Source of the DNA: Pseudomonas aeruginosa PAO1
GTDB lineage: Bacteria > Pseudomonadota > Gammaproteobacteria > Pseudomonadales > Pseudomonadaceae
Assembly (NCBI RefSeq): GCF_000006765.1
Contig: NC_002516.2
Strand: one strand, 5' to 3'
DNA: 64,000 nucleotides
Below are positions 584-43,172 of this stretch, one piece after another. The first letter of the stretch is position 1; every line of letters begins with the position of its first letter. Under the pieces are notes generated by a model. That model was not told where the DNA came from. It saw only the letters and a list, made by a program, of their open reading frames with translations, and made no database searches. The position numbers and the translations under genes are program-made.

Positions 584-2500
584 TTACTTCAGGTCCTCGC
601 GCGGCGGTTTGCCGGGCTGGCTGGCGTAGTCCGGCAGGGCGCTGATCGCCTGTTCCTTGTCGGGGATGCTGGACGGGTCGAGGTCGCCGCCGACGTTGCG
701 CGGGTCGGTGGGGATCGCCGAGGGAATCACCACGGTGCGCTCGGCCAGCGGCCAGCCGAGAATGGTCTCCAGGCGCCCGCCTTCCTCCTCGGGGCCGGTG
801 ATGGCGTCCAGGCGCAGCGGCAGCGGATGGCCGATCAGCCGTTCGACCTCGCCCGCCGCCTCCGGCGCGGCCAGGGTCAGGCCGGTGCGGTAGAAGCCCG
901 GCAGACTCGAGCGCGGCACATAGACCCGCAGCAGGGCACCGTTGCGGATCCGGCCGCGCGCGTCGGGTTCCTGGTCCTGGGCGTAGCCGTAGGCCAGCGC
1001 CGGATCGCCGGCGATATAGAAACCGCGCCAGATCGCGTCGAGGTCCTGGCTGCGCGCGCGCACCCCGCCGAAGACGATGCTTTGCGCCGCTTCGAGGAAG
1101 GTGCCGTGGTAGCCGACGAACACATAGCCGCGCTCCTCCAGTTGGCGGTGCGCCTGGAGCAGCCGCTCCACCGTCCAGTTCTGCGTGCCGCGGGTGCTGA
1201 AGCTGATGTCGCCGCCGTCGCCGAGGAACTCCGCGCCAGTGGGATAGTTGCGCTCCAGCAGGGCGTCGCCGCTGTCCGCCGGGCCCGCGCATTCACCGGC
1301 GGCGACCGGGCAGGTCAGGCTCACCACGTCGGCGCTGGCCGCGCCGGCCTCGTCGTTGCCTGTGCCCTGCCGGACGAAGCGCTCGCTCTCGGCGGCGGCC
1401 AGGGTCAGGGCCAGACGGGCCTGCTCCGGCTGCTCGCGGATCGCTTCGCCCAGGTCGCCGCCGCTGCCGGGGCTGGCCAGGGCGTTGCGGATCACCTGGT
1501 CGACCTGGTTCCACGACAGCCGCGCCGCCAGGTAGAGGGCGACCAGCCGCTGCACCGGATAGCCGCACTGCTCCAGTTGTTCCCAGCCGCGCGGCTGGCG
1601 ATGACGGGTGAAGGTCTCCAGCGGCAGGTGGCAGGCCTGGTGCGCGGTCAGCGCGGCCAGGCTGCCGCCCTCGGGGAAATGCAGGCGATGACTGATGACC
1701 GTGGGCTTGATGTCCAGGTCATGCTTCGCCGGGTTGCCGGCGAGCACCCGGTAGATCTTGCCTTCCCAGGTATCGTCGAGGTTGCAGCGCTGCTGGGCGA
1801 GGTAGTTGTAGACCCCGTCCAGCGGGTCGAGCAGGCACAACACCTTGCCGCTGGCCCATTCGCTCCAGCGCTTTTCCCGGCGCGGCTGGGCCTGGGCCAT
1901 GACCACGCTGACCCCGGCATGGCTGATGGCGAGCGTCGGCTGCATCTCGTTGCTCTCGTGCGCCCTGACGAAGAAGGTGGCATCGCGCGCCAGCTTCGCC
2001 AGCAACTCGTCGCCCATCTCGATGGTGTAGATCGGCGACATGTGGCTGAGCTGGTTACCGGCGTTCAGTTCGTGGATGAACACCTTGATGTTCGAAGGCT
2101 TCTCGTGGCCGATCGGCACCAGCCAGTTCAGCGACCAACTGCCGCGCGCCTGGCGCGTGTAGCTGTAGCGCACCGGCTTGTTCGGCTCGACGCCACCTTC
2201 GAGGCGGATGGTCAGGCCGTCGCTGGTGATGCTGAGGGCGTTGTCGATGGCCAGCTTGAGCGCGTCGTTGCCGCCCTCCAGGACCATGGAGTAGTGCAGC
2301 ACGCCCTGGCCGTTGGTGTCGGCGATGGCCGGGTCGACGCTCATGCGGCTGGAACGCACGCCGTCCTTGAGGTCGAGCACGCAGGCCTTGGCGCATTCGT
2401 TCCAGAGGTCGAAGGCTTCCTCGGCGGCGGACGCGAACGAGCCGCCGGCGAGCAGGCCGAGGCTGGCGACCAGGGGGATCCAATGGGGTGTCAGGTGCAT
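584..2500 (-). CDS. toxA: Exotoxin A precursor (EF-2 ADP-ribosyltransferase)
   Basis: 638 aa; signal peptide then AEEAFDLWNEC; furin site RHRQPR; YHGT motif; C-terminal REDLK. Confidence 0.99.
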   Translation of the reverse strand: MHLTPHWIPLVASLGLLAGGSFASAAEEAFDLWNECAKACVLDLKDGVRSSRMSVDPAIADTNGQGVLHYSMVLEGGNDALKLAIDNALSITSDGLTIRLEGGVEPNKPVRYSYTRQARGSWSLNWLVPIGHEKPSNIKVFIHELNAGNQLSHMSPIYTIEMGDELLAKLARDATFFVRAHESNEMQPTLAISHAGVSVVMAQAQPRREKRWSEWASGKVLCLLDPLDGVYNYLAQQRCNLDDTWEGKIYRVLAGNPAKHDLDIKPTVISHRLHFPEGGSLAALTAHQACHLPLETFTRHRQPRGWEQLEQCGYPVQRLVALYLAARLSWNQVDQVIRNALASPGSGGDLGEAIREQPEQARLALTLAAAESERFVRQGTGNDEAGAASADVVSLTCPVAAGECAGPADSGDALLERNYPTGAEFLGDGGDISFSTRGTQNWTVERLLQAHRQLEERGYVFVGYHGTFLEAAQSIVFGGVRARSQDLDAIWRGFYIAGDPALAYGYAQDQEPDARGRIRNGALLRVYVPRSSLPGFYRTGLTLAAPEAAGEVERLIGHPLPLRLDAITGPEEEGGRLETILGWPLAERTVVIPSAIPTDPRNVGGDLDPSSIPDKEQAISALPDYASQPGKPPREDLK

Positions 2501-3593: not shown

Positions 3594-5663
3594 ATGGCTG
3601 TCAATGATTACGAACCTGGTTCGATGGTTATTACACATGTGCAGGGTGGTGGGCGTGACATAATCCAGTATATTCCTGCTCGATCAAGCTACGGTACTCC
3701 ACCATTTGTCCCACCAGGACCAAGTCCGTATGTCGGTACTGGAATGCAGGAGTACAGGAAGCTAAGAAGTACGCTTGATAAGTCCCATTCAGAACTCAAG
3801 AAAAACCTGAAAAATGAAACCCTGAAGGAGGTTGATGAACTCAAGAGTGAAGCGGGGTTGCCAGGTAAAGCGGTCAGTGCCAATGACATCCGCGATGAAA
3901 AGAGTATCGTTGATGCACTCATGGATGCCAAAGCAAAATCGCTAAAGGCCATTGAGGATCGCCCGGCCAATCTTTATACGGCTTCAGACTTTCCTCAGAA
4001 GTCAGAGTCGATGTACCAGAGTCAGTTGCTGGCCAGCCGAAAATTCTATGGAGAGTTCCTGGATCGCCATATGAGTGAGCTGGCCAAAGCGTACAGCGCC
4101 GATATCTATAAGGCGCAAATCGCTATCTTGAAACAAACGTCTCAAGAGCTGGAGAATAAAGCCCGGTCATTGGAAGCAGAAGCCCAGCGAGCCGCTGCTG
4201 AGGTGGAGGCGGACTACAAGGCCAGGAAGGCAAATGTCGAGAAAAAAGTGCAGTCCGAGCTTGACCAGGCTGGGAATGCTTTGCCTCAACTGACCAATCC
4301 AACGCCAGAGCAGTGGCTTGAACGCGCTACTCAACTGGTTACGCAGGCGATCGCCAATAAGAAGAAATTGCAGACTGCAAACAATGCCTTGATTGCCAAG
4401 GCACCCAATGCACTGGAGAAACAAAAGGCAACCTACAACGCCGATCTCCTAGTGGATGAAATCGCCAGCCTGCAAGCACGGCTGGACAAGCTGAACGCCG
4501 AAACGGCAAGGCGCAAGGAAATCGCTCGTCAAGCGGCGATCAGGGCTGCCAATACTTATGCCATGCCAGCCAATGGCAGCGTTGTCGCCACCGCCGCAGG
4601 CCGGGGTCTGATCCAGGTCGCACAAGGCGCCGCATCCCTTGCTCAAGCGATCTCCGATGCGATTGCCGTCCTGGGCCGGGTCCTGGCTTCAGCACCCTCG
4701 GTGATGGCCGTGGGCTTTGCCAGTCTGACCTACTCCTCCCGGACTGCCGAGCAATGGCAGGACCAAACGCCCGATAGCGTTCGTTACGCCCTGGGCATGG
4801 ATGCCGCTAAATTGGGGCTTCCCCCAAGCGTAAACCTGAACGCGGTTGCAAAAGCCAGCGGTACCGTCGATCTGCCGATGCGCCTGACCAACGAGGCACG
4901 AGGCAACACGACGACCCTTTCGGTGGTCAGCACCGATGGTGTGAGCGTTCCGAAAGCCGTTCCGGTCCGGATGGCGGCCTACAATGCCACGACAGGCCTG
5001 TACGAGGTTACGGTTCCCTCTACGACCGCAGAAGCGCCGCCACTGATCCTGACCTGGACGCCGGCGAGTCCTCCAGGAAACCAGAACCCTTCGAGTACCA
5101 CTCCGGTCGTACCGAAGCCGGTGCCGGTATATGAGGGAGCGACCCTTACACCGGTGAAGGCTACCCCGGAAACCTATCCTGGGGTGATTACACTACCGGA
5201 AGACCTGATCATCGGCTTCCCGGCCGACTCGGGGATCAAGCCGATCTATGTGATGTTCAGGGATCCGCGGGATGTACCTGGTGCTGCGACTGGCAAGGGA
5301 CAGCCCGTCAGCGGTAATTGGCTCGGCGCCGCCTCTCAAGGTGAGGGGGCTCCAATTCCAAGCCAGATTGCGGATAAACTACGTGGTAAGACATTCAAAA
5401 ACTGGCGGGACTTTCGGGAACAATTCTGGATAGCTGTGGCTAATGATCCTGAGTTAAGTAAACAGTTTAATCCTGGTAGTTTAGCTGTAATGAGAGATGG
5501 AGGGGCTCCTTATGTCAGAGAGTCAGAACAGGCTGGCGGGAGAATAAAGATCGAAATCCACCACAAGGTTCGAATAGCAGATGGAGGCGGCGTTTACAAT
5601 ATGGGGAACCTTGTTGCAGTAACGCCAAAACGTCATATAGAAATCCACAAGGGAGGGAAGTGA
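3594..5663 (+). CDS. pys2: Pyocin S2 killing protein (HNH DNase)
   Basis: 689 aa; pyocin S domain ending PIYVMFRDPR; C-terminal HNH motif EIHHKV...GNL...HIEIH. Confidence 0.97.
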   Translation: MAVNDYEPGSMVITHVQGGGRDIIQYIPARSSYGTPPFVPPGPSPYVGTGMQEYRKLRSTLDKSHSELKKNLKNETLKEVDELKSEAGLPGKAVSANDIRDEKSIVDALMDAKAKSLKAIEDRPANLYTASDFPQKSESMYQSQLLASRKFYGEFLDRHMSELAKAYSADIYKAQIAILKQTSQELENKARSLEAEAQRAAAEVEADYKARKANVEKKVQSELDQAGNALPQLTNPTPEQWLERATQLVTQAIANKKKLQTANNALIAKAPNALEKQKATYNADLLVDEIASLQARLDKLNAETARRKEIARQAAIRAANTYAMPANGSVVATAAGRGLIQVAQGAASLAQAISDAIAVLGRVLASAPSVMAVGFASLTYSSRTAEQWQDQTPDSVRYALGMDAAKLGLPPSVNLNAVAKASGTVDLPMRLTNEARGNTTTLSVVSTDGVSVPKAVPVRMAAYNATTGLYEVTVPSTTAEAPPLILTWTPASPPGNQNPSSTTPVVPKPVPVYEGATLTPVKATPETYPGVITLPEDLIIGFPADSGIKPIYVMFRDPRDVPGAATGKGQPVSGNWLGAASQGEGAPIPSQIADKLRGKTFKNWRDFREQFWIAVANDPELSKQFNPGSLAVMRDGGAPYVRESEQAGGRIKIEIHHKVRIADGGGVYNMGNLVAVTPKRHIEIHKGGK

Positions 5664-26782: not shown

Positions 26783-26831
26783 GCGGTCGAGGCGTCTGCG
26801 CCGCGGACTTCGCGTTGTCGTGGCGCTTCGC

Positions 26832-26851
26832 AACTGCCAGATCTGGCAGGC
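26832..26851. promoter_or_regulatory. las/rhl box (LasR/RhlR site)
   Basis: AA-CTGCCAGATCTGGCAG-GC: a perfect 16-bp CT-N12-AG palindrome nearly identical to lasB OP1 (ACCTGCCAGTTCTGGCAGGT, recalled). Confidence 0.75.
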
Positions 26852-27281
26852 GCGGAAGAAGGAAAACCTGGCCCGGAAAAAAATATCCGTATTTTTCCAA
26901 GGGGAAATAGGCCGCGCGATCTGGCGATTCTGGTACTTCAGTACAGGGAACCGCCTTGGCGTATCGTCCCGAATAAATGTGACGTTTTGCGCAGCGCCCT
27001 TCCGGGTTTGCACGATTGGTATAGCCCTGGCTGGATGAAATTCACTCTTGCCGCTGGCCAGCGTAGTTCTTTGCAAGTCAAAAGTTCGCCGTCAATAATT
27101 ATTGTGGATAACTATTGTTCCAGGCTTTTCCTGTCAACTGTGCGAAGCGTCAGCTTATTGCCGGTTTTTTCTCTCGCTATTGCTTTCTCCACGTTCCGAA
27201 GAAGTTCGGGCGTGCAGGTTTCTTTGCTGTTTTCAGCGAGAACCATTCGTTTCAACAATTCGAATATGTGGAGATTCAGAA

Positions 27282-27602
27282 ATGAAAAATCAGGTGAATG
27301 CCCTGGCGGTTCTAAGTGTGGGTGAAATCGAACAAGTTTCTGGCGCCGGGACTTTCCTGGGCGATGCCATCATCAACGGCGTCTACGCGGCCAACTCCTT
27401 CCTGAACTCGCCGCTGTTCTCCAGCATCGGCAACGCGGCCAGCGCCATCGGCCTCAACCGTACCCACGAGCTGGTCGACCTGCTGGCCTTCCAGGTGCCT
27501 TCGGTGGCGGCGATCACCGTCGGCAAGATTCTCGGCGGGACCGACAACCACAATGTTCCGTTGCATTACAACAAGGAAAGCGGCGAAGGGCTTTACAGCT
27601 GA
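27282..27602 (+). CDS. Small protein with a double-glycine-type leader (bacteriocin/microcin-like precursor)
   Basis: 106 aa from ATG 27282 (GGAGA RBS): MKNQVNALAVLSVGEIEQVSGA|GTFLGDAIING...; Gly/Ala-rich hydrophobic mature part. Confidence 0.75.
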   Translation: MKNQVNALAVLSVGEIEQVSGAGTFLGDAIINGVYAANSFLNSPLFSSIGNAASAIGLNRTHELVDLLAFQVPSVAAITVGKILGGTDNHNVPLHYNKESGEGLYS

Positions 27603-27679
27603 TCGCAACCTGTTGAAAGAGCGATTCGATGCTCAGGCATCGAGTCGTTCCTGGTTAATGCATTGATGGAGTCGATGAT

Positions 27680-29737
27680 ATGAAACGCAGGAGTGTGCTC
27701 TTGTCGGGTGTCGCCCTGAGTGGAACCGCACTGGCCAATGACTCGATATTCTTTTCACCCTTGAAATACCTCGGGGCGGAACAACAGCGATCTATCGATG
27801 CCTCGCGAAGTTTGCTGGACAACCTGATTCCGCCGAGTTTGCCGCAATATGACAACCTGGCCGGAAAGTTGGCGCGGCGTGCGGTATTGACCAGCAAGAA
27901 ACTGGTATATGTCTGGACCGAGAACTTCGGCAATGTCAAAGGCGTGCCGATGGCCCGCTCGGTGCCGCTGGGCGAGTTGCCGAATGTCGACTGGCTGTTG
28001 AAGACCGCCGGGGTGATCGTCGAGCTGATCGTCAATTTCGTCGCCTCGTTGCCGGCGTCGGCCGCAGCGCAGTTCGAGCGGATCGCCACCGGGCTCAGCG
28101 GTGACCTGGAGGCGGCGCGCCAGGTCCACGAGGCGTTGCTGGAGGAGGCGAAGAACGATCCGGCCGCGGCCGGCAGCCTGCTGCTGCGCTTCACGGAGTT
28201 GCAGACGCGGGTGATCGCCATACTGACGCGGGTCGGCCTGCTGGTCGACGATATTCTCAAGAGCGCCAGCAACCTGGTTACCCAGAGGGGGCAGGGCGAC
28301 GGCCTGAATCGCTTCCGCGCGGTGTTCGGCACCCTGCGCCTGCCGGAGGTCGCCGACAGCTTCCGTGACGACGAAGCGTTCGCCTACTGGCGGGTGGCCG
28401 GGCCTAATCCGCTGCTGATCCGTCGCGTCGATGCGCTGCCGGCCAACTTTCCGCTGGGCGAGGAGCAGTTCCGCCGGGTGATGGGCGCCGACGACAGCTT
28501 GCTGGAGGCCGCCGCCAGCCGCCGCCTGTATCTGCTGGACTACGCCGAGCTGGGCAAGCTGGCGCCGTCGGGAGCGGTGGACAAACTGCTCACCGGGACG
28601 GGCTTCGCCTATGCGCCGATCGCCCTGTTCGCCCTTGGCAAGGATCGGGCGAGGCTATTGCCGGTGGCCATCCAGTGCGGTCAGGACCCCGCTACCCATC
28701 CGATGTTCGTGCGTCCCGCCGAGTCGGAGAGTGATCTGTACTGGGGTTGGCAGATGGCCAAGACGGTGGTCCAGGTCGCCGAGGAGAACTACCACGAGAT
28801 GTTCGTCCACCTGGCCCAGACCCACCTGGTGAGCGAGGCGTTCTGCCTGGCCACCCAGCGCACCCTGGCGCCCAGCCATCCGCTGCACGTCCTGCTCGCC
28901 CCGCACTTCGAGGGCACCCTGTTCATCAACGAGGGGGCGGCGCGGATCCTGTTGCCCAGCGCGGGCTTCATCGACGTGATGTTCGCCGCGCCGATCCAGG
29001 ACACCCAGGCCACCGCCGGCGGCAATCGGCTGGGTTTCGACTTCTACCGCGGCATGTTGCCGGAGAGCCTGAAGGCGCGGAACGTCGACGACCCGCTGGC
29101 GCTACCGGACTACCCCTATCGCGACGACGGCCTGCTGGTATGGAATGCCATCCGCCAGTGGGCGGCCGACTACGTGGCGGTGTACTACGCCAGCGACGGC
29201 GACGTCACCGCTGACGTCGAACTGGCGGCCTGGGTCGGCGAAGTGATCGGCAGCGGCAAGGTGGCCGGGTTCCGCCCGATCACCGGTCGCAGCCAACTGG
29301 TCGAGGTGCTGACCATGGTGATCTTCACTGCCTCCGCGCAGCATGCGGCGGTCAATTTTCCCCAGCCTTCGATGATGACCTACGCACCAGCCATCTGTGC
29401 CATGAGCGCGGCGCCGGCACCGGACTCGCCAAGCGGCAAGAGCGAGGCCGATTGGTTGAAGATGATGCCGCCGACCCTGGTGGCGCTGGAGAAGGTGAAC
29501 ATCTATCACCTGCTCGGTTCGGTCTACCACGGTCGCCTGGGCGACTACCGGCAGACCGGGTTCCCCTACGCGCCGGTGTTTTCGGACAGGCGGGTGACCG
29601 CCAGCGGCGGCCCGCTGGAGCGCTTCCAGGCACGCCTGAAGGAGGTCGAGGCGACCATTCGCACGCGCAACCAGGCGCGCCGCAGGCCCTACGAGTACCT
29701 GTTGCCGAGCCGGATCCCGGCGAGCACCAATATCTGA
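27680..29737 (+). CDS. loxA: Secreted lipoxygenase
   Basis: 685 aa; [11 protein letters not shown] and HAAVN iron ligands, C-terminal STNI; RR-containing signal peptide. Confidence 0.97.
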
Positions 29738-29751
29738 GCCGGAGAAAGAGG

Positions 29752-29775
29752 ACGGGGCGCCCCTGGGCGCCCCGT
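29752..29775. terminator. GC-rich hairpin between convergent loxA and the TerC gene
   Basis: ACGGGGCGCCC-CT-GGGCGCCCCGT. Confidence 0.55.
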
Positions 29776-29780
29776 TGCTC

Positions 29781-30515
29781 TTAGCGGCCTTCGCTTTCGG
29801 CGGCGTCCGCCGGCGCGGCATGCCGCTGCTTCAACTGGCGGCGCGCCAGGAGGCTGCCGAGGAGGATCACGAACAGCGCGCCGAAGGCCGCCGCACCGTA
29901 GTGCAGGTAGGAATCCCATTGCGCGTAGGGCGCCAGCCAGGGCTTCAGGGCGCTGTCGGTGAGCAGCATGCCGCCGGCGATCCAGCCGAGCAGGCCGCCG
30001 CCGAAGAGGATGATCAGCGGGAAGCGGTCGATCAGGCGCAGGATCAGCTGGCTGCCCCAGACGATGATCGGGATGCTGATCAGCACGCCCAGGGAGACCA
30101 GGAAGAAATCCCCGGCCGAGGCGGCGGACAGGGCGATGACGTTGTCCAGGCTCATCACCGCGTCGGCGATGATGATGGTCTTGATCGCGCCGAGCAGGTG
30201 GGTGCTGCCCTTGATGTCGTCGCCGTTCTCCTCCTCCGGCAGCAGCAGCTTGATGCCGATCCACAGCAGCAGGAGCGCGCCGATTACCTTGAGGTAGGGC
30301 AGGTCGAGCAGGTGCAGGGCGAAGAACAGCAGCAGGATGCGGATCAGGATGGCGCCGGCGACGCCACCGAAGATCGCCTGCTTGCGCCGGTGCGCCGGCA
30401 GGTGCCGGCAGGCGAGGGCGATGACTACGGCGTTGTCGCCGCCCAGGAGGATATCGATGGCGACGATCTGCAGCAGGGCTGTCCAGAACGTCGGGTCGCT
30501 CAACCAGTGGATCAA
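29781..30515 (-). CDS. TerC-family membrane protein
   Basis: Probable TTG start at 30515 after GGAG; DILLGGDNAVVIALAC, ADAVMSLDNV and SIPIIVWGS motifs. Confidence 0.88.
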   Translation of the reverse strand: MIHWLSDPTFWTALLQIVAIDILLGGDNAVVIALACRHLPAHRRKQAIFGGVAGAILIRILLLFFALHLLDLPYLKVIGALLLLWIGIKLLLPEEENGDDIKGSTHLLGAIKTIIIADAVMSLDNVIALSAASAGDFFLVSLGVLISIPIIVWGSQLILRLIDRFPLIILFGGGLLGWIAGGMLLTDSALKPWLAPYAQWDSYLHYGAAAFGALFVILLGSLLARRQLKQRHAAPADAAESEGR

Positions 30516-39809: not shown

Positions 39810-42800
39810 ATGTTCAGTGGCAAAACCGACGACAGGGGCTTGTGGGCGGGCATCCAGGCCGGTGTGCTGTTCTTTCTCGCCGCCCTGGCCTGCATCTACC
39901 TGTCGCGCCAGCCCGCCACCATCGCTGCGATCTGGCTGCCCAACGCGATCCTCACCGCCGCCCTGCTGCGCGCGCCGCTGCGCCAGTGGCCGGCGATCCT
40001 GCTCTGCTCCGCCGTGGCCAACCTGGCGGCCAACCGCCTGTATGGCGACAGCCTGTGGATGAGCGCGGCGTTCCTGCCGGCCAACCTGAGCGAAGCGATC
40101 TTCGCCGCGATGCTGTTACGCATCAACCGGGTGCGCGAGGACTTCGAATTCAACCTGCATTCGGCGGTTCGCGTGCTCTGGGCCGGCGCGCTGATTCCGC
40201 CCTTGCTCGGCGCCTCGGTGGGCGCGGTGCTGGTCAGCGTCTTCGGCATGGGGCGTTTCCCGGAAATGTGGGCGCGCTGGTACGTGGGCGATGCGATGGG
40301 CATGCTCGCGCTGCTGCCGTTATGCATGGCCAGCAACCTGGCGGCCTGGCGTCACGCTCTGTCGGGGCGGGCGGGAGTGGACAACGCGATGCTCCTGCTG
40401 GTGACCCTGGTGATCAGCTTCGTGGCCCTGACGCGCCTGCCCTACGCCTTCATCTACGTGCTCCTGCCGCTGCTGGTGGCCGCCGCCAGCACCAGCGTGT
40501 TCGGTACCGCGCTGATCGGTTGCCTGAACACCTGTTTCATCGCCGTGCTGATCGCCCTCGGCGTGTTCCTCCCCGAGTCGTCCCAGCAGCGTTTCGGCGA
40601 GCCGCTGCTGTACCTGCCGATGGCCTTGACCCTCATTCCCGCCTTCCTGGTCTCGGTGATCATGGAGCGCAGCCGCCGCGAGCAGCATCAGGTGGCCATC
40701 GGCGAGGCGCAGTTCCGCGGCGCCATGGAATTCTCGGCGATCGGCATGGCCCTGGTGTCGCTGGAGGGGCGGCTGTTCAAGGTCAACGAGGCGCTGTGCC
40801 GGATGCTCGGCTATTCCGCCGAACGCCTGGGCGAGCTGTCGTTCCAGGAGATCACCTATGTGGACGACCTGGAACTGGACCTCGACCTGGTGCGCGACCT
40901 GCTCGCCGGGCGTATCAACTCCTACCAGATGGAGAAGCGCTACCTGCGCCAGGACGGCGAAACCTTCTGGGCGCGCATCAGCGTGTCGCTGGTGCGCGAC
41001 GAGGAGGGAGTCGCCCAGTACTTCGTCACCCAGGTGGAGGATATCGACAGTCGCAAGCGTGCCGAGCTGGAGCGCGAGCGCCTCGCCGAACGGATCAAGC
41101 TGGCCACCGACGCCGGGCAGATCGGCATCTGGGAGTGGGACCTGGCGCGCAACCGCCTGCACTGGGATTTCCGCATGTTCGACCTGTACGGCATCCGCAG
41201 CGGTCCCGGGGAGACCACGGTGGAGCAGTGGAAGGCGAGCCTGCATGCCGAGGATCACGACCGCGTGCTGCGCGAGCTGGAGCGCGCCGTCAGCGGGTTG
41301 CAGAAATTCGACTGCGAGTTCCGTATCGTCCGCCCCAACCGCGAGGTTCGCCACCTGCGGGCGATCGCCACGCTGACGCGCGACGCGGACAACCGTCCGG
41401 TGCGGATGATCGGCATCAACAGCGACATCACCGAGATCCGCACCCTGGCGGAAACCCTGCACGAGGAAAAGGAACGCCTGCAGGTGACCCTGTATTCCAT
41501 CGGCGATGCCGTGTTGACCACCGACGCCGGCGGCCGCGTGACCTTCATGAACCCGGTGGCCGAGGCGATGACCGGCTGGACCTTGCAGGACGCCATCGGC
41601 GCGCCCCACGAACTGGTCTTCAACGTGCTCGACAGCGACACCGGCGAGGCCCTGGAAAGCCCGGTGCGACGCTGCCTGCAGAACACCCGGGTGTTCTACC
41701 TGGAGGACGGCGCCACGCTGATCAGCCGCAAGGGCGAGCAGCACGATATCCAGAATTGCGCGGCGCCGGTGCGCACCCGCGATGGCGAGATCATCGGCAC
41801 CGTGCTGGTGTTCCAGAACGTCACCAAGGCCCGGGCGATGCAGCGCGAGCTGAGCTATCACGCCTCCCACGATGCCCTCACCGGGCTGTTCAACCGCACC
41901 AAGTTCGAGGAGGAGCTGCAACGCGCCCTGGCCAACGCCCAGGAGCGGGCGACCCAGCATGCGCTGTGCTTTATCGACCTCGACCGCTTCAAGGTGGTCA
42001 ACGATTCCGCCGGGCACGCGGCGGGCGACATGCTGCTGCGCGAGCTGAGCCGGATTCTCGCCGACCGCACCCGCGCCTCCGACACCCTGGCGCGGCTGGG
42101 CGGCGATGAGTTCGGCCTGCTGCTGTTCGATTGCGACCTGGCGGAGGCGGAGCAGGTGGCGAGCAAGCTCATCGAGCAGATCTGCTCGGTGCGCTTCCCC
42201 TGGGAAGGGCGGCTCTACGACGTGGGCGCGAGCATCGGCATCACCGCCCTTACCGCCACCTCGCGCAGCACCAGCGAACTGATGAGCCAGGCCGACGTGG
42301 CCTGCTACGCGGCCAAGCATGCCGGGCGCAACCGGGTCTCGGTGTACCAGTTCGGCCATGAGGAAGTGGAGCGCCAGCACCGCGACATACTCCTCGCCAG
42401 CGGGCTGCGCGAGGCCCTGGAGAACGACCGCTTCCAGTTGCAGGCGCAGGAGATCGTCCCGGTCGGCCCCCGCCGCGACGGCGACCGGCACTACGAGCTG
42501 CTGCTGCGACTGTACGATCCGGATGGCCAGATGACTCCGCCGGGCGCCTTCATCCCGGCCGCCGAGCGCTTCAACCTGATGGCCAGCATCGACCGCTGGG
42601 TGATCAACGAGGCGCTGATCAACTTCGGCGCGCGGATCGCCGCGGTGGAGGGCCTGAGCATCGGCATCAACCTGTCCGGCAACTCGCTCAACGACCCGCT
42701 GTTCCTGCCTTACCTGCTGGATCGCATCGAACACTCGCCGCTGAGGCCGGAGCGCCTGTACTTCGAGCTGACCGAGACGGCGTTGATGAACCAGTTGTCG

Positions 42801-43172
42801 GTGGCTTCGCGGATCGTCGCCAAGCTGCGCGACCTCGGCTGCAAGGTGGCGCTGGACGACTTCGGCTCCGGCCTGAGTTCCTTCAATTACCTGAAGAATT
42901 TCGTCGTCGACGTGATCAAGATCGACGGCAGCTTCGTCCGCAACCTGGACAAGAGCCCGGTGGACCAGGCCATCGTCGACTCCATCAACCAGATCGCCCA
43001 CCGCCTGGGCGCGGTGACTGTGGCCGAGTTCGTCGAGAGCCGGGAAATCCTCGATCACCTGGCGCGCCTCGGGGTGGATTTCGCCCAGGGCTACGCGGTC
43101 GGGCGGCCGCAGCCGTTCGCCACGGTGCTCGACCAACTGCGCAGCGGGCTTCGTCGCCAGGAGTTGGGCTGA
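39810..43172 (+). CDS. MASE1-PAS x3-GGDEF-EAL c-di-GMP protein (YegE/DgcE-like)
   Basis: N-terminal TM region, PAS/PAC repeats, RASD I-site, GGDEF, ELLLR and DDFGSG. Confidence 0.92.
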   Translation: MFSGKTDDRGLWAGIQAGVLFFLAALACIYLSRQPATIAAIWLPNAILTAALLRAPLRQWPAILLCSAVANLAANRLYGDSLWMSAAFLPANLSEAIFAAMLLRINRVREDFEFNLHSAVRVLWAGALIPPLLGASVGAVLVSVFGMGRFPEMWARWYVGDAMGMLALLPLCMASNLAAWRHALSGRAGVDNAMLLLVTLVISFVALTRLPYAFIYVLLPLLVAAASTSVFGTALIGCLNTCFIAVLIALGVFLPESSQQRFGEPLLYLPMALTLIPAFLVSVIMERSRREQHQVAIGEAQFRGAMEFSAIGMALVSLEGRLFKVNEALCRMLGYSAERLGELSFQEITYVDDLELDLDLVRDLLAGRINSYQMEKRYLRQDGETFWARISVSLVRDEEGVAQYFVTQVEDIDSRKRAELERERLAERIKLATDAGQIGIWEWDLARNRLHWDFRMFDLYGIRSGPGETTVEQWKASLHAEDHDRVLRELERAVSGLQKFDCEFRIVRPNREVRHLRAIATLTRDADNRPVRMIGINSDITEIRTLAETLHEEKERLQVTLYSIGDAVLTTDAGGRVTFMNPVAEAMTGWTLQDAIGAPHELVFNVLDSDTGEALESPVRRCLQNTRVFYLEDGATLISRKGEQHDIQNCAAPVRTRDGEIIGTVLVFQNVTKARAMQRELSYHASHDALTGLFNRTKFEEELQRALANAQERATQHALCFIDLDRFKVVNDSAGHAAGDMLLRELSRILADRTRASDTLARLGGDEFGLLLFDCDLAEAEQVASKLIEQICSVRFPWEGRLYDVGASIGITALTATSRSTSELMSQADVACYAAKHAGRNRVSVYQFGHEEVERQHRDILLASGLREALENDRFQLQAQEIVPVGPRRDGDRHYELLLRLYDPDGQMTPPGAFIPAAERFNLMASIDRWVINEALINFGARIAAVEGLSIGINLSGNSLNDPLFLPYLLDRIEHSPLRPERLYFELTETALMNQLSVASRIVAKLRDLGCKVALDDFGSGLSSFNYLKNFVVDVIKIDGSFVRNLDKSPVDQAIVDSINQIAHRLGAVTVAEFVESREILDHLARLGVDFAQGYAVGRPQPFATVLDQLRSGLRRQELG

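Follow-up and report, generated by a model that had tools for sequence, protein, structure and literature searches.

A double-glycine-leader protein encoded upstream of loxA in Pseudomonas aeruginosa and the pairing of its family with secreted lipid oxidases

What is the role of the small protein whose gene lies directly upstream of the lipoxygenase gene loxA in Pseudomonas aeruginosa? The question was raised by a stretch of 64,000 nucleotides of P. aeruginosa PAO1 DNA (contig NC_002516.2), referred to as the window from now on, in which PA1168 precedes loxA (PA1169). These are the numbers of the peptide-lipoxygenase pair in the literature, where both genes are handled as an operon (PMC8271024, PMC2691606). 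LoxA is a secreted lipoxygenase and exoprotein, and it has been studied as a virulence factor which oxidises host lipids and whose expression and in vivo activity are puzzling (PMC6702342). A literature search yielded no paper that gives a function to PA1168 or to its paralogue PA4139. The analysis described here places PA1168 in a family of leader-bearing proteins that are encoded beside lipid oxidases. We consider it somewhat probable that PA1168 is cleaved, exported in trans and then serves as an extracellular accessory partner of LoxA.

The initial annotation of the window had described an open reading frame (ORF) of 106 amino acids starting at the ATG in position 27282, on the same strand as loxA and 77 bp before it. 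Sequence and translation agree with this description, the distance between the stop codon of PA1168 and the start of loxA being 77 nt (Table 1). The gene had also been called "unannotated-type", which does not hold, as it is annotated publicly; near-identical proteins in public genomes are, though, named only "hypothetical protein". The N-terminus of PA1168 carries the full double-glycine (GG) consensus at all six positions, namely L(-12), E(-8), I(-7), V(-4), G(-2) and A(-1). This leader consensus predicts cleavage between A22 and G23.

Table 1. Positions of the features of the PA1168-loxA region in the window.
Feature	Position	Strand	Basis
PA1168 ORF, 106 aa	27282-27602	+	ATG 27282, translation MKNQVNALAVLSVGEIEQVSGAGTFLGDA...GLYS
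PA1168 stop codon TGA	27600-27602	+	sequence, translation
PA1168 ribosome-binding site GGAG, 8 nt 5' of ATG	27270-27273	+	direct reading
Double-glycine leader, residues 1-22, MKNQVNALAVLSVGEIEQVSGA; predicted C39 cleavage after Gly21-Ala22	27282-27347	+	translation, conservation
Mature domain of PA1168, 84 aa, four predicted helices	27348-27599	+	conservation, AlphaFold2, selection
Stem-loop of 12-14 bp, GAGCGATTCGATGC-TCAG-GCATCGAGTCGTTC, between PA1168 and loxA	27619-27650	+	folds, z = -2.8 and -3.4
loxA (PA1169), secreted lipoxygenase, 685 aa, N-terminal Sec-type signal	27680-29737	+	Pfam PF00305, E 1.7e-59
Sigma-70-like promoter match between alginate lyase gene and PA1168	27070-27099	+	consensus scan
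GC-rich terminator-like hairpins at loxA end, convergent with minus-strand TerC-family gene (Pfam)	29752-29788		scan

Conservation of the leader among homologues had been named beforehand as one of the points on which the assignment hung. In an alignment of 55 sequences the consensus positions are kept by 51-55 of the 55 homologues (L in 54, E in 55, I/V/L in 54, V in 51, G in 55 and A/G/S in 55). The peptide of a metagenomic locus (L101), whose LoxA is 94% identical, differs from PA1168 at eight leader positions, all outside the consensus, and at only one of the 84 mature residues. In the comparison with an orthologue of 75% identity from an organism of low GC content, nonsynonymous changes per site (pN) amounted to 0.16 and synonymous changes (pS) to 0.76, the latter value being saturated. 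Within P. aeruginosa the protein is 98-100% conserved across hundreds of entries. The mature part of PA1168 is, as judged from these comparisons, under purifying selection. Since the leader positions are kept, the substitutions avoid the consensus and pN is low against a saturated pS, the gene is real and selected, leader included.

A word-indexed homology search with PA1168 alone returned only the orthologues of P. aeruginosa and P. paraeruginosa. Exhaustive searching with phmmer among 1.84 billion representatives found 17 relatives, and a profile search with the family alignment found 59 proteins. The hallmark of the PA1168/PA4139 family is a GG leader followed by a domain of ~75-90 residues with G27, N38, L41-N42, S47-S48, G50, H62, D66, G85-G86, H95 and E99 (numbering of the window protein). 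PA1168 fits this description; together with G57, these are the invariant or near-invariant residues. Identity within the family is 30-50% from Gamma- to Betaproteobacteria. No Pfam or NCBIfam model matched PA1168 at E <= 1. No paper in the literature search mentioned "double-glycine" together with "cholesterol oxidase". Neither the family nor its fold, nor the systematic association with lipid oxidases, appears to have been described; its export logic is of an already known kind.

A recurring module of a GG-leader peptide and a secreted lipid oxidase had been suggested in the initial annotation, and the neighbourhood survey bore this out. Homologous loci (numbered with the prefix L) were gathered by scanning with the neighbouring oxidase as the query, and the PA4139 locus of P. 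aeruginosa, a species missing from the results of that scan, was reached via contigs encoding family proteins. A lipid oxidase was found within ~6 kb of the family member in 18 of 19 distinct loci, mostly directly downstream and on the same strand. This count comprises the window and 18 other distinct loci (17 of these 18 are paired), and the exception without visible oxidase, L004, is a contig of 1.4 kb. At 16 of the 18 paired loci the enzyme is a class II cholesterol oxidase (FAD_binding_4 and Chol_subst-bind domains) with a signal for twin-arginine translocation (Tat), and at two it is a lipoxygenase. The paired loci stem from Pseudomonas, Acinetobacter, Serratia, Mixta, Pantoea, Paraburkholderia, Albidiferax and metagenomic contigs. 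Peptide and enzyme genes are separated by 77-131 nt in 12 of 13 same-strand loci, and by 317 nt in L097.

The gene order varies around this pair. Peptide, cholesterol oxidase, membrane fusion protein (MFP) and an exporter of the ATP-binding cassette (ABC) type with a C39 peptidase domain follow one another in a metagenomic contig (L003), in five Acinetobacter species (L005, L006, L008, L009, L010), in a metagenome-assembled genome (MAG) of Albidiferax (L018) and in a wastewater contig (L097); an outer membrane efflux protein (OEP) is added in some of them. Serratia combines peptide, MFP, peptidase-C39 ABC exporter (PCAT), AraC regulator and oxidase in a single locus. The peptide gene lies upstream of the oxidase gene with no exporter nearby in L001/L002 and L011, and downstream of it in Paraburkholderia. 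There the family member was called as 190 amino acids (L095:7104-9573), and in Pantoea a phage-holin-family gene adjoins the oxidase gene (L096:8354-10231); both observations could reflect alternative release routes or a mis-called start. In two long-read metagenome assemblies (L091, L092) the peptide P0069 adjoins a fragmented oxidase and PCAT. The genes of the latter two are split into several short ORFs, as pseudogenes or through frameshift errors of assembly.

Lipoxygenase-linked peptides were found in P. aeruginosa (the window and four more loci) and in one other, low-GC lineage (L088), whose lipoxygenase is 71% identical to LoxA and is followed by different downstream genes. The lipoxygenase of L088 begins at the equivalent of LoxA residue 39, with an in-frame stop upstream (L088:379-485 and L088:485-2437). 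A metagenome scan with LoxA gave four loci only, 94-99% identical to LoxA and all with the peptide; no new lipoxygenase lineage was found in it. The maximum-likelihood tree joins the lipoxygenase-linked peptides in one clade (support 100/99) that is nested with oxidase-linked peptides (95/84). PA4139 falls into the tree's other half, which also holds the members from Serratia, Mixta and Pantoea. Consequently, PA1168 is not a recent copy of PA4139, and the peptide was retained when the enzyme was exchanged. On this tree, PA1168 goes back to a peptide-oxidase cassette whose cholesterol oxidase gave way to a lipoxygenase.

Is there an exporter for the family? The exporter type was found with the peptide, together with an MFP and in some cases an OEP, in 11 loci (L003, L005, L006, L008, L009, L010, L018, L089, L091/92, L094, L097). 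One chromosomal site of Acinetobacter, between tatC and a gene for a 445-residue protein, is instructive in this respect. Its oxidase is constant, and the peptide on the left and the MFP, PCAT and outer membrane protein (OMP) on the right are both present in L005 and L006 and both absent, leaving no remnant, in L007. This joint presence and absence ties the peptide to the exporter. Only peptide, oxidase, MFP, PCAT and OMP are common to the Acinetobacter loci; no conserved small ORF besides the peptide occurs in them.

The absence of a PCAT from the window, already remarked upon in the initial annotation, was confirmed by tblastn with a PCAT query, which matched nothing in the 64 kb. A regular-expression scan detected no other ORF with a GG leader in the window. 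As there is no exporter in the window, export would have to occur in trans, and the assignment of PA1168 as a PCAT substrate exported in this way is well supported by its predicted leader and by the gene neighbourhoods of the family. The most likely exporter is the type I system PA4142-PA4143-PA4144. It suggests itself because its genes lie next to that of the paralogue PA4139 and because it handles the same leader type.

The P. aeruginosa locus in question (L089) has the order tyrS (minus strand), family peptide, a cholesterol-oxidase-type protein of 597 amino acids with the Tat motif SRRSFL, a DUF5862 protein of 99 amino acids, MFP, Peptidase_C39 ABC transporter, OEP and a LysR-family regulator. 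PA4140 has been published as the Pfam 09129 Tat/Xcp exoprotein, secreted under phosphate limitation (PMC4899797), and tesG as PA4141, and therefore the family member of this locus is PA4139. In the PCAT encoded here both catalytic motifs, ECGLAC and HWNFNH, are intact. It shares 60% identity with the PCAT of L003, a contig resembling the Acinetobacter loci. PA4139 is a true paralogue of PA1168, with 44% identity over the whole length (E 1e-21). The two proteins are alike in leader, invariant residues, position upstream of a secreted lipid oxidase and regulation in four datasets. PA4139 differs from PA1168 in its position on the second main branch of the tree, its short "YHYxxEW" C-terminus, its location in an exporter locus and its partner, a flavin cholesterol oxidase.

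PA1168 had initially been likened to PA4141, described as lying beside a cholesterol oxidase and a CvaAB-like exporter. The locus was rightly named, the relative was not; it is PA4139. PA4141 (TesG) was rejected as a homologue of PA1168, since alignment with the family profile by hhalign covers only 16 residues of the leader. The protein in the PA4141 position matches Pfam DUF5862 (PF19180, E 1.8e-21), and neither PA1168 nor PA4139 has a DUF5862 match.

Three side observations concern PA4139. In one assembly (GCA_025126175.1; L089:6212-6475) comparison with P0037 revealed an allele with an in-frame deletion of 12 amino acids (LPPIHQLADTLG), by which the invariant His and Asp are lost; it may be a natural loss-of-function variant. 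Three P. aeruginosa contigs (L085, L086, L087) end inside the gene, 24 contigs carry a 93-residue "partial" product, and short-read assemblies often break in or just after PA4139, which may be due to the hairpin-rich spacer of 76% GC that follows. The place of tyrS directly 5' of PA4139 is taken in L086 by a prophage-like block with an integrase.

The mature part of PA1168 had been described as a Gly/Ala-rich hydrophobic peptide of ~84 residues. The length is correct; the composition is not. The 84 residues (8.7 kDa, pI 5.3, no Cys) have a grand average of hydropathy (GRAVY) of 0.25, i.e. they are moderately hydrophobic, with residues 62-86 as the sole strongly hydrophobic stretch, and they include invariant polar residues and form a predicted folded helical domain. 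AlphaFold2, run on the family alignment, gave a compact helical model with a predicted local distance difference test score (pLDDT) of 91.2, a predicted template modelling score (pTM) of 0.74 and helices at residues 24-41, 44-55, 59-83 and 95-101. Foldseek found no credible fold relative in the PDB (best E 3.2, template modelling scores 0.28-0.41). Sequence-profile matches to PDB entries were spurious antibody chains and were discarded.

Between PA1168 and loxA no obvious terminator had been noted at first. This is not quite accurate, as a hairpin with a weak U-tail is present (Table 1), and the literature treats the genes as an operon. All 12 loci that were folded have a corresponding hairpin behind the stop codon of the peptide gene, many with a clear T-run, and two G-U pairs of the hairpin are replaced by Watson-Crick pairs in L101. 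Given the weak U-tail in the window and the transcriptomic operon, a leaky terminator or a stabilising 3' end is likeliest. The hairpin probably acts in one of these ways and sets a high ratio of peptide to enzyme transcript. A second, weaker hairpin at 27658-27681 holds the GGAG of loxA (27668-27671) in its loop and stem and could affect initiation of loxA translation. No Rfam family scored above threshold in the intergenic regions.

Published expression data connect the two paralogues, PA1168 and PA4139 changing in parallel in four datasets. They rank in the top five of induced genes in the PA0285/pipA mutant dataset, are induced in tpbA biofilm cells (PMC2691606) and belong to the genes repressed most strongly on lens-conditioned mouse corneas; in a rubB mutant PA1168, PA1169, PA4139, PA4140 and PA4141 are all down. 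PA1168-PA1169 responds as an operon to manipulation of cyclic di-GMP (c-di-GMP) (PMC8271024), and FleQ and PhoB bind the PA4139 promoter (PMC6610081). A FleQ-box pattern matched three times in the window with 3.9 matches expected; the one match 5' of PA1168 is no evidence of a site.

From these results the following sequence of events may be proposed. The 22-residue leader of PA1168 would be recognised and removed by a PCAT, and the 84-residue helical domain would be exported in a single step by a type I system. The route in trans would be PA4142-PA4143-PA4144, the neighbour of PA4139 and reported secretor of TesG. LoxA would leave separately through Sec and type II secretion, and PA4140 through Tat and type II secretion. 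Outside the cell, mature PA1168 would become an accessory partner of the enzyme encoded by the adjacent gene, either by docking it on the target membrane or the biofilm matrix or by exposing lipid embedded in the membrane. Through the hairpin 3' of PA1168, transcripts of the peptide gene would probably outnumber those that read through into loxA. Synteny alone suggests the partnership with LoxA. The family stays beside a secreted, O2-dependent, lipid-oxidising exoenzyme though the enzyme class changes, and so the proposed cooperation would concern the substrate or the site of action (foreign membranes, matrix) and not chemistry on the peptide.

In function, saposins offer an analogy as lipid-presenting activator proteins. 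They are secreted helical proteins of ~80 residues, and PA1168 could likewise offer membrane lipid to a soluble enzyme, which would explain the pairing with two unrelated lipid oxidases. A saposin fold was rejected for PA1168, as Foldseek gave no PDB match with E < 3 and the mature domain has no Cys and therefore none of the saposin-type disulfides; in sequence, too, no resemblance to saposins was detected.

Several points weigh against the partnership of PA1168 with LoxA. The synteny could arise through shared regulation or ecological use in place of physical cooperation. The genes of peptide and oxidase are convergent in Mixta and Pantoea, where co-transcription does not apply. The lipoxygenase of L088, as called, has no signal peptide and is a poor fit to an extracellular partnership in that lineage. 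Oxidase loci of A. bereziniae, Chromobacterium, Janthinobacterium and all actinomycetes are free of the peptide, and a regular-expression scan detected no GG-leader ORF beside the oxidases of Chromobacterium, Janthinobacterium and the actinomycetes. In vitro, LoxA and class II cholesterol oxidases show activity by themselves. As many oxidase loci have no peptide and the enzymes work alone in vitro, any partner role would be accessory and not obligatory. With regard to export, the evidence on C39 exporters in P. aeruginosa covers the window and the PA4139 locus, and the literature search found no report of PA1168 in an exoproteome or of its processing or secretion.

A wider proposal, which we advance tentatively and regard as possible but doubtful, is that the PA1168/PA4139 family forms the second component of a two-pathway, "binary" lipid-oxidising system. 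A PCAT-exported helical protein would meet an oxidase exported by Sec or Tat and type II secretion, and would enable or target its attack on the lipids of foreign membranes containing sterols or polyunsaturated fatty acids. If this were true, phospholipid peroxidation by LoxA and sterol oxidation by PA4140 would each need a dedicated helper. The invariant His, Asp, His and Glu of the family might then bind a metal or the enzyme. Apart from this proposal, few "hypothetical" genes are as strongly regulated in c-di-GMP and infection transcriptomes as PA1168 and PA4139. The analysis turns these orphan genes into a testable hypothesis of paralogous PCAT substrates, whose family is almost always paired with lipid oxidases across two proteobacterial classes, with the enzyme swapped and the peptide kept. 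It adds two probable substrates to the TesG type I secretion system and indicates that GG-leader proteins of Gram-negative bacteria are not all bacteriocins.

It is unlikely that PA1168 is an ordinary class II microcin which kills competitors and whose proximity to an oxidase reflects only co-regulation or co-inheritance on an islet. The GG leader, a mature size below 10 kDa and neighbours of the types PCAT, MFP and outer membrane factor (OMF) correspond to the class II microcin layout, as known from MccV with CvaAB-TolC, where leader consensus, size class and the export logic of C39 ABC transporter, MFP and TolC-like protein are the same. In addition, the family of TesG, a neighbour of PA4139, gives a weak Bacteriocin_IIc match, and class II microcins occur widely in Gram-negative bacteria, where their annotation is poor (PMC9746304, PMC13101503). 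PA1168 itself, however, matches neither Bacteriocin_IIc nor another Pfam family. No obvious immunity gene had been seen in the window at the outset, and none is evident near PA1168, where the gap to loxA contains a hairpin only; nor does a conserved immunity-type small ORF accompany the peptide elsewhere, the gaps given above holding a hairpin in the 12 folded loci. Microcins evolve fast, whereas the PA1168 family is conserved from Gamma- to Betaproteobacteria, keeps invariant polar residues, has a confidently predicted globular fold and an oxidase neighbour in place of immunity or modification genes, and lacks the Gly/Ser-rich low complexity of microcins; the Gly/Ser/Ala-rich candidates of microcin screens look different. 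The family is missing from the supplementary lists that accompany four class II microcin screens; substring matches there were unrelated peptides. Finally, chance would hardly explain why nearly all family members adjoin one or the other of two rare enzyme classes.

Slightly less probable again is a role of PA1168 as a self-associating protein of the biofilm matrix under high c-di-GMP, which might tether the oxidase. The top-five induction of PA1168 and PA4139 in the PA0285/pipA mutant, their induction in tpbA biofilm cells and their decrease when c-di-GMP was lowered are in line with such a role, as are the binding of FleQ to the PA4139 promoter (PMC6610081) and the link of LoxA to biofilm and pellicle formation (PMC6702342). 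A precedent is MccAB1, a class II microcin of A. baumannii which builds biofilm through amyloid fibres (PMC13188072); it resembles PA1168 as a small PCAT-exported protein with a role beyond killing, and its biofilm context parallels the c-di-GMP induction of PA1168. MccAB1, though, has Gly-Ala-Val aggregation motifs and an immunity protein, and PA1168 has neither this composition nor an immunity ORF. Its predicted compact helical globule is not an aggregation-prone Gly-Ala-Val repeat peptide. Moreover, regulation by c-di-GMP is known for P. aeruginosa only, and the FleQ-box pattern has no above-chance match upstream of PA1168.

We find it marginally less credible still that PA1168 is a host-directed type I effector, similar to TesG (PA4141) and independent of LoxA, that would share exporter and infection regulation with it. 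TesG is likewise made as a precursor of ~100 residues with a double-glycine leader (MKELNDIEVTCVSGG), and it is reported to be secreted by the adjacent downstream type I secretion system of PCAT, MFP and OMF (PMC11959726), which is probably also the exporter of PA1168. The common decrease of PA1168, PA1169, PA4139, PA4140 and PA4141 in the rubB mutant, the joint response of PA1168 and PA4139 on mouse corneas and the induction of LoxA (PMC6702342) and PA4140 (PMC4899797) in infection models could be explained in this way. Beyond the leader, however, PA1168 has no relation in sequence or family to TesG, whose mature part is a Gly-rich DUF5862 domain with a weak Bacteriocin_IIc match and of which only 16 leader residues can be aligned. 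The targets reported for TesG (host small GTPases, NLRC5) can thus not be transferred to PA1168. Family members occur in environmental bacteria as well (Albidiferax, wastewater and soil MAGs, Paraburkholderia, Mixta), and the conserved pairing with oxidases would be left unexplained.

That PA1168 does not function as a secreted protein at all is very improbable. It would then be left over from an old cassette, with a leader that has lost its importance, or would control loxA as a peptide of cytoplasmic or regulatory kind. In favour of this, no exporter lies in the window, loxA is silent in many laboratory strains (PMC6702342) and the PA4139 of one strain has lost the invariant H and D with its 12-residue in-frame deletion, but the leader consensus positions and the mature part are under strong purifying selection, hundreds of P. 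aeruginosa entries are 98-100% conserved, and PA1168 is transcribed highly and specifically.

With accessory partnership with LoxA as the preferred reading, the surroundings of the gene pair may be described briefly. GC content falls to 48-56% over PA1168 and the 5' end of loxA, compared with ~67% in the flanks. Upstream of PA1168 lies an unusually long AT-rich stretch of ~500 bp (26783-27281, 48-52% GC), and the first ~300 bp of loxA are likewise depressed in GC. The low GC content 5' of and across PA1168 suggests foreign origin, dense regulatory binding, or both. In the promoter scan of this upstream region two overlapping matches were found, with 0.6 expected by shuffling; they are consensus matches only and no evidence of function. 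The nearer neighbours in the window are genes for a PL7 alginate lyase, a TerC-family protein, a lytic transglycosylase and NapC/NapB, and the more distant ones code for exotoxin A, an S-type pyocin and NrdA; by these neighbours the stretch was placed in the PA1148-PA1190 interval of P. aeruginosa. The exotoxin A gene (584-2500, minus strand) has all three of its Pfam domains, and the S-type pyocin gene (3594-5663, plus strand) encodes a DNase domain; both genes are normal for this part of the P. aeruginosa chromosome and are unrelated to PA1168. A protein of 1120 amino acids with the domain order MASE1-PAS-GGDEF-EAL, typical of c-di-GMP turnover, is encoded at 39810-43172 on the plus strand, 10 kb 3' of the c-di-GMP-responsive operon. 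Its closeness to PA1168-loxA is probably a coincidence.

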